The notes under the pieces were generated by a model. That model made no database searches. It was not told the DNA's origin and saw nothing but the letters and a program-made list of their open reading frames with translations. DNA of 64,000 bases from Ramazzottius varieornatus (Eukaryota; Animalia; Tardigrada). Shown in pieces: positions 43,016 to 60,486 of the stretch. A program made the position numbers and the translations under genes. Numbering within the stretch: the stretch's first letter is position 1; each line of letters begins with the position of its first letter. The stretch covers positions 726,827 to 790,826 of the forward strand of contig BDGG01000006.1 of assembly GCA_001949185.1 (NCBI GenBank). The letters are read 5' to 3'.

Positions 43016-44670
43016 ATGCCTGCTCGCCGGAGGAACAGAAAGACGCAAGGAAGCCTGGCCGTCCAGAAGGAAATCGAGGTAAGTGCAGCAAAGTGCAATT
43101 AACCACTGCTGTCAGGGAAGCTTGCCCGATTCAGCCTGCTTATTCTTGTTGCAGAAACTGCAGGATGGAGTGTGGATGTGGGCCAACACTATCGAGGCGA
43201 GTTTCGCGACGTTGCCTGCGGAACTGATGAAGCTGCCAATCGCTGAATCCTACGATCATCTGGTGGCTACCATCAACGAACTCATCGAAGCAGCTCTGTG
43301 CAATCCACAGCATCATGCCAAATATGTTAAACTGTTGCTTGCTCTGAGCACCAAAGTCAAACCCAAAAACCAGAACATCACTTTTCACAGCCTATTGGTC
43401 CAGCAAGTGCAAGAGTACCTCGACTACGTGAAAGCTGAATGCGAATCCGCCTACGAGCAGCGGGGCGACGATAAAGGTCCCGTCACCCCACTGGACGAAG
43501 ATGCCTACTCCAAGAAGGAACGTTTCTTGGCCTTCACACAGTAAGAAACTGGAAAATGTCCCCATCTGTTTTGACTTTGAAACTGAATGGCGTTCCTGGT
43601 TTACAGATTGGTGGTGAACTTGTACGACTTCAACATAGTGTCGTATTCGTTCATGACAAAGTCCTGTAAGGAGCTACTTCCGGAGGCCAATAATGTTCGT
43701 CTGGTTGATCAGGTCAAGCTGGAATGCCTGTGCATGCTGTTGACGTCGTATACTGACGGCAATAAGAAGTCGCTAACACATATTAATGTAAGAGTAATTC
43801 ATGGTGAATCGTTGCTACGTTTTCCTTAGCTTTGGTCGGTGCCGACGGTATATTTATAATTTATCGCGTGTTTCATTGCAGGCTGTGGGGCCCTACATTA
43901 CACAACTTCGAAAGTTCTGCGAGAAGAAAGTTACCTCCGCCAGAGTGCGCACGACAATGTGGAATACCGTGGCAAAGTACGATCAGGTGATGTCCACATT
44001 GCACAGTGCTGCTGCTGCTGCGGAGAAAAAGAAGCAAGCAGTCCCGAAGCCTCAGAAGGCTCAACCGGCTAACCAGCCTTCCGTCCTACCTGTACAAAGT
44101 CATTCAGACCCACTGACAGTCAGGGCTATCACGATTGATTTTACTCGAGGCGCCAGAATACGTGAGGAACCCACCGGCTTGAGATCGTCTTCGTCGTGTG
44201 GCTCTTTCCACAGCGCAACTGACAGCTTGCACAGTCAAGACAGTACTTTAAAAAGCTGGGCTCTTCCCATACTTCCCTCTACTTCCAAGCAGCCCCACAC
44301 CGCAACATACGATCAGCTGGTGGAGATGTACGTGATGTGTCTGCAAAACCACCAGCTTCTGGAAGGGTTGAGTGGAAAGACATTGGCGAAGAACTGTGGT
44401 CTGACTCAGCCGGACTTCCGTCATCTGCAGTGGATGAAGAAGGAGGGCAGCTCGGACTTGGCGGGTAAAGCCAACAACATTCACCTTTCGGTCGCAAAGT
44501 TCCTGGATGAGGCTGAACGGTCGTTGCAGCAGCATATGCGAGCGTACTATGAAACCGTGGAGAAGGCCGCCGAGGAAAAGATCAACGAGTTGGTGGAAAG
44601 TCTGCCGGCAAACAGTCGAGCCGACATCAACAAAAGAGCGTACGAGGCCTCGTTGTTCAAGTCGCACTGA
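43016..44670 (+). CDS. Divergent MIF4G-domain protein, array copy 1 (exons 43016-43078, 43155-43540, 43607-43787, 43882-44670); appears intact
   Basis: Spliced product follows the eIF4G middle-domain pattern: [50 protein letters not shown] and YITQLRKFCEKKVTSARVR. Then an S/P-rich linker and the family C-terminal domain. Confidence 0.8.
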
Positions 44671-45326
44671 TAGTCGACGACGGATCTGCAATGTCACGAT
44701 CTTAAGCGGCCCTCGGAGATTTTTTTCCTTGACGCGCGTGATTTTTTATCTATTTCATTCCAAACTTATTTTTTTCGCATATGAATCACAGCACAATTTT
44801 GCTCGAAGCCCGAGAAATGCTCGGCCTCGAAGCCAGAGAGCTCGATCTTTTCTGACAGTTTATCCAAGTCCAAGATTATTCAGGGAGCAGTAGAACTGTA
44901 GAAAACTAGAAGTTGCCAAGAATAGGGTCCTGGAAGAGAAGATGAGGGACTTCATGCGGGAGGGACCACCCGTTGTATGGCACGCTGACCGGTGAATTAC
45001 TGGATTGTTGTACTCTAAACTTGATTTTGCCCATTTCTGGATCCGGATCGGACGCTAAGAGTTTTCGGCGTTCGGGAGATGGATTTCGGATAGCTTTCTG
45101 TAACGTGACCTTTCGAGGTTGCAGATTGACGGCTTGGGTGATACGACTGGAAGTTCGTTTACTTTTTCACCCTGCTCTACTTGAAACTTGGAGATTGCAC
45201 GCACGAGTAGCTGTTGGCTGAAATACCAAATCCTGATGGTGAGCGCCGTTTTTTCCAGTCCGGCGCGTTGAGTTGTAACATATTTTTGTGTTATTGTATA
45301 GTATCGAAGGGTCGAACTGTTTGAAG

Positions 45327-58254: not shown

Positions 58255-58698
58255 CGTAGGTTTGCCCTAGTCGTACTATGTACCAGATAGGTATTGTTAA
58301 CGTTGTTCATTAAATGATAAGTTGTTGGTTCCGCAGATAAAGCCAAACAAATAATTCCGACGCAGCGGTCTAGCCTCCACCGTCCCTATTTTGATCAGGG
58401 CTTTGCATGGAACGTTTTACTGGTCTCATGTCCTGTGATCACACTTCTGTTCTTGCTGAAGCGTAAGCACTAAATTACAGTAATTCTTGCGAAGCACCTT
58501 GAGCCACTTGACAAGGAAGCCAAATCAGCAGCTGTACAAAATCTTGCCGTTAACTGCCTATGCTGGAGTATTGCTATGCGTACAGAGACAGAAGGAGAAC
58601 GTAGGGTACGTACAACTGGAATCTAATCCGGCCAGTTTCAGTTTCTTTCAGTCCTGCAATTACTCGCTCATCGGAGAAGTTGAGATAGTTTTCGGAAA

Positions 58699-60486
58699 AT
58701 GAGAGGCCTTTTCGGTTGTGTCCGAGCAGAGCACGAAGTCGACTTTGAGACGGAGGCCGAGGTAAGTGCAGTGGAATGGCGATGTATTGGCCAACGCGTT
58801 ATTGTCTGACGGTACAAGTAGGGTCAAACTAAATCTTCTTATGGCAGGAAATACGCGATGTGGTAGAGAACCTTCTCGCCACAGCCAGCCCGGCAAACGG
58901 CAAACAGCTACTGCATAAACTGATGAAGCTCCCCTTAGCGAAATCCCGCAATCACCTGGAGGTCTTTTCTGACTCAATTATAGAAAGGGCGATGTTCAAC
59001 CCGGATAAGCGGGAGAGCCTTGTAAATCTCTGCCAGTTGGCCATCCGTCAGAACCTTCAGTTCCGCTCCAGCAAGCATGTGGTTGACGACAACGGATATC
59101 CTCTGCAAACCTACAGCTTTCACGAGGTGCTGACTTACCGCCTGCAGCATATTTTTAATGTAGCGAGAATATATTACATGTCTGGTCAAGCTGCTTTGGA
59201 TTGCTTCGAAGATATCGAGCCTGCAGACCTTATTCTTCTCGGAGAAAAGTCTGGTGAACCAAAGGAAAACTATGCAGCCGTCAGCCAGTAAGTGAACAAT
59301 CGAATACTGAATTCTCTTGTCATCAGGCGACCAACTCTGCTGAACTAAAATTGCCCGTATAGGTTTCTGGTCGACCTATATGCTTGCGGAATTTTGTTTG
59401 ATCCAATGATCAGAGCAATCTTCTTTGATCAAGCTACTGGGCCGCTGGTTCCATCCTATGAACTGGATTTACAGTGTCTGCGTAGACTACTGGAAGTGTA
59501 TGTGGAAAAGAACAAAACTTCTAAAGAGAAACTGTCGGTATGATCTTCTCAATGTCTTGTCTGATCGAGTTCTGCCCGTCGCCGTCCCCCGTTCCGCTGG
59601 ACTTCTGGAAGTGCGTACTACGGTGTTGCAATATGTTTTCTCCTCCTAGAAGGTGGCGCCCCACTTTGACAACCTCCGAAAACACCTCCCGTCTAAGCTG
59701 CCTGAAGCCGCCCACTACATCTACGAGTACGATGATATGAAAAAGGCATTGAATATCCTGTCCACTGTTGAAAGAAGCGACTTCATCGAAATGAACCCCG
59801 CCCAGTTTGGATACCTACGAACTATCACTACAGATGCCGACACGACAACCTACGAGTTTGAGGGTACAGCTTCCAGTACTCCAACCAAACTGGTCAGTGT
59901 CCAGTCGACGACTCTGCGAAACTGTGTCAGCTCTCCGAAAAGTACACTTCAAAAACTAGGCTTTGCGCTTTGCAGTCCATTAATTTTATTATTCTGGTCA
60001 ATTTTAGCGCAACACGTACCTCAGCATTCCTTGAAATCAATCCCCAAGAGAAGAGGAAAACGTCGGGCCATTCTTCTGCCATCCCAACTTTCCCAAGAGA
60101 CTCGTAGTAATGGCGATCTTTTCGATCAGCTAGTTTACGCATACACCGTGCGTCGGATAAACGACGGCCATCTTCGTGCCCTGGAAAGCAAAGACCTCAC
60201 GCGAAAATGCCGGCTCTCTCGACCGGACTTTTGTTACTCACAATGGGCCAAAAAGAACGGAAGTGCTGCCTTGGTGAACAAGGTGAACACTCACTTAGCC
60301 ACCGTAACGTCCCTCCTCGAACGCACCGAGAGGTCGCTGCAGCAAAATACGCGGGAATACCATCGAACGGTGGAGAAGATCGTCGAGAAAAGGATCCATG
60401 AGCTGCTCGACAGTCTTCCCGCCAATGTCCGCGCAGATGTCAAGAGGAGAGCGTACGACGCCTCGCTGCCGAATTCATCACGGTGA
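58699..60486 (+). CDS. MIF4G-family copy 5; appears intact
   Basis: ETEAE|EIRDVVENLL...HLEVFSDSIIERAMFNPDKRESLVNLC, SFHEVLTYRLQHIF, Q|FLVDLY, DLQCLRRLL and PHFDNLRK, then the C-domain ending LLDSLPANVRADVKRRAYDAS. Same intron positions as copy 1. Confidence 0.78.

Follow-up and report, generated by a model that had tools for sequence, protein, structure and literature searches.

A tandem array of genes coupling an eIF4G-type MIF4G domain to an orphan C-terminal domain in the tardigrade Ramazzottius varieornatus

What do five related genes, lying in a row on one strand of a tardigrade contig, encode, and what could such a family be for? The genes occupy positions 43016-60486 of the stretch of DNA analysed here, a 64,000-nucleotide segment of the Ramazzottius varieornatus assembly G000 (contig C6, 726827-790826) that we call the window. 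An earlier note, made from the letters alone, had described them as five same-strand paralogs, and a six-frame reading of 43-60.5 kb together with protein fits confirms this. On balance we lean, with moderate confidence, towards a tardigrade-restricted multigene family whose products would act as adaptors of eIF4A-family helicases and be unable to build the cap-binding eIF4F complex.

The array and its two-domain proteins

Three of the array members are intact (RvY_11289, RvY_11295 and RvY_11296), copy 2 is a transcribed and spliced pseudogene, and copy 3 is a C-terminal remnant. The earlier note had counted four full-length copies; one of these, copy 2, is the pseudogene. Exon maps were made by fitting the database proteins P0001, P0002 and P0003 back onto the window. 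These three and P0017 were used for the full-length protein analyses, and other exons were searched individually. In copy 4, exons 1 and 2 and their junctions were read by eye from the DNA; the fit of exon 3 begins at 56452, and its start at 56448 was placed by eye. The model confidence used to delimit the linker is the predicted local distance difference test score (pLDDT).

43016-44670, plus strand: copy 1 (RvY_11289, P0001, 472 aa), intact; P0001 fits the window exactly
43016-43078, 43155-43540, 43607-43787 and 43882-44670, plus strand: exons of copy 1, from the P0001 fit
Residues ~20-262 of copy 1, plus strand: MIF4G domain
44038-44289, plus strand: predicted disordered linker of copy 1, aa 263-346, delimited by pLDDT and by differences to RNA run X10
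44290-44667, plus strand: orphan C-terminal domain of copy 1, aa 347-472, a predicted helical hairpin
45327-46992, plus strand: copy 2, transcribed and spliced pseudogene; introns 2 and 3 at 45877-45971 and 46153-46232
52245-52637, plus strand: copy 3, a mosaic remnant in which a stop separates two partial pieces of the C-terminal domain
55743-57586, plus strand: copy 4 (RvY_11295), intact, 472 codons; the 313-aa isoform 2 protein P0002 fits the last three exons
55743-55829, 55929-56314, 56448-56610, 56731-57043 and 57117-57586, plus strand: exons of copy 4
58699-60486, plus strand: copy 5 (RvY_11296, P0003, 482 aa), intact, the most divergent member of the array; P0003 fits the window exactly
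58699-58761, 58848-59287, 59363-59537, 59650-59941 and 60008-60486, plus strand: exons of copy 5

In the protein fits, the introns of copies 1, 4 and 5 are 66-120 nt long and have GT..AG borders. Three intron positions, with phases 0, 2 and 0, are common to the paralogs, as the earlier note had claimed, and exon 2 has the same length, 386 nt, in copies 1 and 4. A fourth intron of phase 1 lies inside the linker of copies 4 and 5. The splice structure of these two copies is that of the NCBI gene models, RNA contigs having been compared over 43000-47000 only.

Sequence comparison and structure prediction both support the assignment of the N-terminal ~240 residues as an eIF4G-type MIF4G domain. 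Copy 1 matches the Pfam MIF4G profile (PF02854) with 34.0 bits (gathering cut-off, 30.8 bits) and an E-value of 3.1e-8, residues 37-197 aligning with profile positions 15-152, and a precomputed database annotation agrees. Against PDB sequences, a HMMER search with copy 1 returned human eIF4G1 HEAT1 (8huj_B; E 8.5e-5) as well as DAP5 and eIF4GII, and these were its only significant matches (E <= 0.002). The alignment reproduces the helix-motif matches to eIF4G that the earlier note had given. Identity to the middle domain of eIF4G1/eIF4G3 is ~20%.

An AlphaFold model of copy 1, built from a 12-row alignment, has a mean pLDDT of 70.7. It contains an all-helical domain up to about residue 262, with pLDDT mostly 64-90 in the MIF4G domain and below 50 at residues 269-346. 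When the model was compared with the PDB by Foldseek, DAP5, eIF4G1 and eIF4GII filled the first five ranks (4iul, 8huj, 6zmw and 1hu3), with E-values of 1.2e-5 to 3.3e-4, target template-modelling (TM) scores of 0.70-0.75 and 228-246 aligned columns; yeast and trypanosome eIF4G followed, and then CWC22, UPF2, PAIP1 and CNOT1. The MIF4G identity that the earlier note had proposed is supported.

Searched singly, exons of copies 1, 2 and 4 give weak Pfam MIF4G matches that are in register (copy 4 exon 2 alone: 17 bits, E 0.005). Neither copy 5 (P0003) nor RvY_18540 (P0017), a family member encoded outside the array, has a Pfam MIF4G match at E<=1. They are assigned to the family by full-length homology to copy 1 (28% identity and E 4e-44 for copy 5; end to end with E 4e-27 for RvY_18540) and by the family profile, built from P0001, P0003 and P0017, which matches human eIF4G1 HEAT1 with E 2.8e-6 over profile positions 24-258. 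Overall, identity between paralogs is 23-31%.

The remaining modules of a canonical eIF4G were sought in the same proteins. Only 21 residues (copies 1 and 5) or 29 residues (copy 4), encoded in exon 1, precede the MIF4G domain, which leaves no room for an N-terminal eIF4E-binding region, and inspection of P0001 by eye found no Tyr-x4-Leu-hydrophobic motif outside the folded domain. Pfam searches at E<=1 found no MA3 or W2 domain in P0001, P0002, P0003 or P0017. On both counts the earlier note had it right. MA3 and W2 domains do occur elsewhere in the R. varieornatus genome, including in a gene with the order MIF4G...W2 on contig C4; given this canonical gene, the array family is additional to the canonical factors.

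Behind the MIF4G domain lies a linker of 80-100 residues that is not alignable between paralogs. Over the last ~125-140 residues, by contrast, identity between array members is 43-52%, and 33 alignment columns are the same in all four members aligned. Folded alone by AlphaFold, this C-terminal domain reaches a pLDDT of 88 and a predicted TM score of 0.68, and the model consists of two long antiparallel helices with flanking helices. It has no Pfam match above noise and no match among PDB sequences; its best Foldseek E-value, 1.4, was taken as no match, and a look-up in the ESM Atlas gave no usable match. Searched against VIA, it gave Z-scores of at most 8.5 scattered over hundreds of unrelated helical proteins, which is the background for helical models. 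The Pfam families T4_Rnl1_C and Apolipoprotein were considered for the C-terminal part and rejected, being below their cut-offs and inconsistent between paralogs. A conserved C-terminal domain without a recognised relative, as the earlier note had described it, therefore stands.

The family extends beyond this array. R. varieornatus has at least seven family loci, five of them in the tandem array. Two further loci have MIF4G-like exons upstream of the C-terminal domain:

C17:374706-375110: locus with product P0011
C19:312024-313597: RvY_18540, product P0017

A profile of the C-terminal domain was searched against 1.84 billion representatives and matched 13 proteins, of which 12 are R. varieornatus paralogs or products of environmental contigs: copies 2, 4 and 5, P0011, seven short products of ENA metagenome contigs, and the Logan product P0013. 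The thirteenth, P0014, an apolipoprotein-like repeat protein fused to a G-protein-coupled receptor, was judged spurious. A word-indexed protein search with copy 1 alone returned only copy 1 itself, and one with the family alignment added RvY_18540 and fragments from Logan and ENA. A scan of JGI metagenomes with the C-terminal profile gave 124 pattern matches, none of which was confirmed.

The ENA contigs L013-L015 have the domain order of the array members, with MIF4G exons upstream of the part that encodes the C-terminal domain. They resemble the window only in coding parts and at 69% DNA identity, which indicates a more distant relative, whereas L016, the Logan contig, aligns with the C19 locus from end to end at 89% identity and so comes from a close one. 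Upstream of the C19-type gene, positions 129-238 of L016 contain ~100 nt that match about 18 dispersed places in R. varieornatus at 73-81% identity and are probably a short interspersed repeat. The tree built from the C-terminal domains was poorly resolved, but it separated the C19 type (100/100) and paired copy 4 with one environmental sequence (84/82), suggesting that some of the duplications are older than the species split.

No named tardigrade besides R. varieornatus was among the matches, other tardigrade genomes not having been searched directly. Within the databases searched, the profile and protein searches support a lineage-restricted family, which agrees with the earlier proposal.

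Transcription, decay and divergence within the array

RNA contigs from four runs, belonging to four studies, were placed on window positions 43000-47000; such contigs give no expression levels. Introns 1 and 2 of copy 1 are removed at GT..AG borders in contigs of all four runs, and intron 3 (43788-43881) is cleanly removed in three. In the divergent contig of run X10, position 43781 is joined to 43882 with six other letters between them. The absence of the introns from the contigs indicates that the runs are RNA and that copy 1 is spliced as modelled. Runs X1 and X10 each have one contig that covers spliced copy 1, the 650-nt spacer and unspliced copy 2 without a break (43882-47000), which suggests read-through transcription, pre-mRNA or carry-over of DNA.

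Copy 2 bears several lesions. The donor of its intron 1 is GC rather than GT, and relative to copy 1 its exon 2 has one extra base (+1) in a run of T near 45590, which shifts the frame. There is an in-frame stop at 46383, the C-terminal domain lies in another frame, and the NCBI model at this place is an open reading frame (ORF) of only 109 aa (P0004). The frameshift is not an assembly error, since RNA contigs are identical to the window over that stretch. Introns 2 and 3 are removed in run X6, showing that the pseudogene is transcribed and processed.

No MIF4G exons were found for copy 3. An RNA contig has a loose 3' end that maps to 52642-52665, just past the copy 3 stop. In run X6, spliced copy 2 (45692-47000) and the end of copy 3 (52484-52777) are joined in one RNA contig; 1109 nt separate them there, as against 5.4 kb in the DNA. 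The join could be a read-through transcript with a long intron or a chimeric assembly.

The X10 contig differs from the window by ~1.4% and has +1 and -2 insertions or deletions inside copy 2 and none inside the coding sequence of copy 1. For classification of the single-nucleotide differences, the copy 1 coding exons were joined. The comparison covers 28 listed differences, with 14 further ones unlisted, and the counts are small: 19 of the 28 are nonsynonymous and nine synonymous. Among the differences listed, they are distributed as follows.

MIF4G domain of copy 1: 5 nonsynonymous, 1 synonymous
Linker of copy 1: 12 nonsynonymous, 5 synonymous (17 of the 28 listed differences)
C-terminal domain of copy 1: 2 nonsynonymous, 3 synonymous

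This pattern suggests fast evolution, with the linker changing fastest and the C-terminal domain being the most constrained part.

Between copies 3 and 4 there is one further feature:

53700-54349, strand not assigned: intergenic inverted repeat with an assembly gap; arms at 53700-53963 and 54086-54349

The arms are 264 nt long and 92% complementary, and the gap (a run of N at 54051-54085) falls within the 122-nt spacer. It lies 1.4 kb past copy 3 and 1.7 kb ahead of copy 4 and is crossed by no family reading frame; since the gap is intergenic, continuity across it affects none of them.

The array is flanked on the opposite strand by a large gene with Gln/Pro-rich low-complexity ORFs directly upstream of copy 1 (37214-42534, minus strand) and by a multi-exon gene resembling short-chain dehydrogenases/reductases directly downstream of copy 5 (60879-61892, minus strand). 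Farther away, ORFs with four LysM-like repeats adjoin an ORF resembling glycoside hydrolase 19, of chitinase type (17546-19285, minus strand), long ORFs at 25905-28367 (plus strand) resemble the reverse-transcriptase part of a retrotransposon of the type without long terminal repeats, and transposase-like ORFs are present at 6-16 kb of the window.

Candidate functions and alternative explanations

MIF4G domains dock DEAD-box ATPases: eIF4A binds to eIF4G, DAP5 and PAIP1, eIF4A3 to CWC22, and DDX6 to CNOT1. Because MIF4G domains are platforms of this kind, the family proteins may be expected to recruit helicases. We picture each protein as a short N-terminal tail, an eIF4G/DAP5-type MIF4G domain made of HEAT repeats, a disordered and fast-changing linker, and the orphan C-terminal domain with its predicted helical hairpin. 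By analogy, the MIF4G domain would most likely recruit or sequester a helicase of the eIF4A family, and the conserved C-terminal domain would tether the proteins to a lineage-specific partner or to each other. The result would be a non-canonical adaptor or decoy, unable to bind eIF4E or PABP. The roles in stress, dormancy or antiviral defence that the earlier note suggested are conjecture. The array itself is a product of tandem duplication and is turning over, its present state being three intact genes, one transcribed pseudogene and one remnant.

Several points weigh against this proposal. Helicase docking is argued from analogy, and a complex prediction for the copy 1 MIF4G domain (aa 20-265) with R. 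varieornatus eIF4A3, made without controls, gave a score of 0.01 and counts neither way. Copy 5 and RvY_18540 miss the Pfam MIF4G profile when searched alone, and some members may no longer have the helicase-binding surfaces. The modelled C-terminal fold is a generic helical hairpin and says nothing about a partner. The mostly amino-acid-changing differences in copy 1 fit weak constraint as well as fast adaptive change.

With respect to the candidate helicases, the R. varieornatus eIF4A3 was read as an intronless DEAD-box gene of 409 aa (L019:959-2188, minus strand, which is G000:C2:4991958-4993187). The eIF4A1-like gene (C7:1440924-1442488) is made up of small exons. The DEAD-box loci inspected read as eIF4A3-, DDX54-, DDX46- and DDX55-like.

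The alternative that survives best, which we regard as possible although doubtful, places the MIF4G domain in nuclear or decay-related RNA metabolism, where it would dock eIF4A3 or DDX6 in the manner of CWC22, NOM1, UPF2 and CNOT1. Foldseek gives a probability of 1.0 to the MIF4G domains of CWC22, UPF2, PAIP1 and CNOT1, copy 1 begins with a basic stretch, the linker of copy 5 has a basic cluster, and the genome contains an intronless eIF4A3 gene. However, the sequence matches are confined to eIF4G1, eIF4G2 and eIF4GII, and in Foldseek the E-values of the eIF4Gs lie two to four orders of magnitude below those of CWC22, UPF2 and CNOT1.

A second explanation is that the array is mostly evolutionary debris, a set of eIF4G-derived duplicates drifting towards loss, most of them without a selected function. 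Two of the five members are dead, run X10 has further frame-breaking insertions and deletions in copy 2, nonsynonymous differences in copy 1 outnumber synonymous ones by 19 to 9 among those listed, and the paralogs are only 23-31% identical. Yet three ORFs of 472-482 codons have stayed open over four or five exons with their intron phases kept, and the C-terminal domain is 43-52% identical next to a linker that cannot be aligned. Among the listed differences, its nonsynonymous to synonymous ratio is 2:3, as against 12:5 in the linker. Furthermore, the two-domain architecture is kept in a taxon only 69% identical in DNA, and copy 1 occurs, spliced, in the RNA contigs of four studies. We consider wholesale drift unlikely.

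It is very improbable that one of the described stand-alone MIF4G proteins (PAIP1, SLIP1/MIF4GD or CTIF) is the ortholog of these much-diverged genes, and that the family is hence already known: a short N-terminus with a single MIF4G domain is indeed found in SLIP1 and PAIP1, and the PAIP1 middle domain is in the Foldseek list at ranks 23 and 25, but it lies far below eIF4G/DAP5 (E 0.06 as against 1e-5), SLIP1 and CTIF are absent from the Foldseek top 50, none of the three has a PDB-sequence match, the searches returned no relative of the C-terminal domain beyond the family itself, and the several copies of the family come only from R. varieornatus and environmental contigs.

The adaptor proposal may be carried further. 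Around episodes of extreme stress, tardigrades have to halt gene expression and then resume it. In a more far-reaching version, to which we give little credence, these eIF4E-independent MIF4G proteins would capture eIF4A (or eIF3) through the MIF4G domain, be assembled by the C-terminal domain or parked by it on a lineage-specific partner, and shut down or re-programme translation in desiccation, radiation or recovery; selection for this function would then explain why the array turns over rapidly. To our knowledge, the lineage-specific tardigrade proteins known so far (CAHS, SAHS, MAHS and Dsup) act as protectants rather than as regulators. A tardigrade-restricted, expressed family of several genes that has the helicase-docking domain of eIF4G and none of the other eIF4G modules is a concrete candidate for lineage-specific control of translation or of the fate of messenger ribonucleoproteins. 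Its orphan C-terminal domain folds confidently in prediction and can be expressed and solved. The array is also a clean example of birth-and-death evolution of a gene derived from a translation factor, even if its function should prove mundane, and it illustrates how far MIF4G can diverge, copy 1 alone among the paralogs tested passing the Pfam cut-off.

Some annotation of the family exists. UniProt automatically labels RvY_11289 'MIF4G domain-containing', the other members being 'hypothetical' or 'uncharacterized'. In the literature searched, no paper links MIF4G or eIF4G to tardigrades or names the locus tags of the family, and the supplements of three R. varieornatus transcriptome and genome papers contain no occurrence of its genes. 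The MIF4G part belongs, as a divergent branch, to a domain family already known; neither its combination with the orphan C-terminal domain nor the gene family itself has been described in the searchable literature.

Comparison with known MIF4G proteins

The middle domain of eIF4G1/eIF4G3 (HEAT1/MIF4G) is the best sequence match of the family and among its best fold matches, with TM scores of 0.74-0.75. The family proteins differ in lacking the eIF4E- and PABP-binding N-terminal region, MA3 and W2, and in having the orphan C-terminal domain instead. DAP5 (eIF4G2/NAT1) is the top Foldseek match (4iul, E 1.2e-5, TM 0.70-0.72) and, like the family proteins, has no eIF4E-binding site. In DAP5, however, the MIF4G domain is followed by MA3 and W2, neither of which the family proteins have, and DAP5 is single-copy and pan-metazoan, whereas the array family is multi-copy and lineage-restricted.

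PAIP1 resembles the family in having a single MIF4G domain in a protein of ~480 aa, without an eIF4E scaffold, and is a fold match (3rk6 and 6yxj). This match is much weaker (E 0.06-0.07), and the C-terminal domains are unrelated. In PAIP1 the MIF4G domain is flanked by the PABP-binding motifs PAM2 and PAM1. SLIP1/MIF4GD consists of MIF4G alone, in ~220 aa. It shares with the family the concept of a stand-alone MIF4G adaptor, but the family proteins have ~210 more residues, comprising linker and C-terminal domain, and neither the structural nor the sequence comparison places SLIP1 among its top matches.

CWC22, UPF2 and CNOT1 rank lower (E 0.01-0.2), have no match at the sequence level and carry the domain in other contexts. 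They have the same HEAT-repeat fold, with a Foldseek probability of 1.0, and they exemplify the logic, general to MIF4G domains, of docking a DEAD-box protein.

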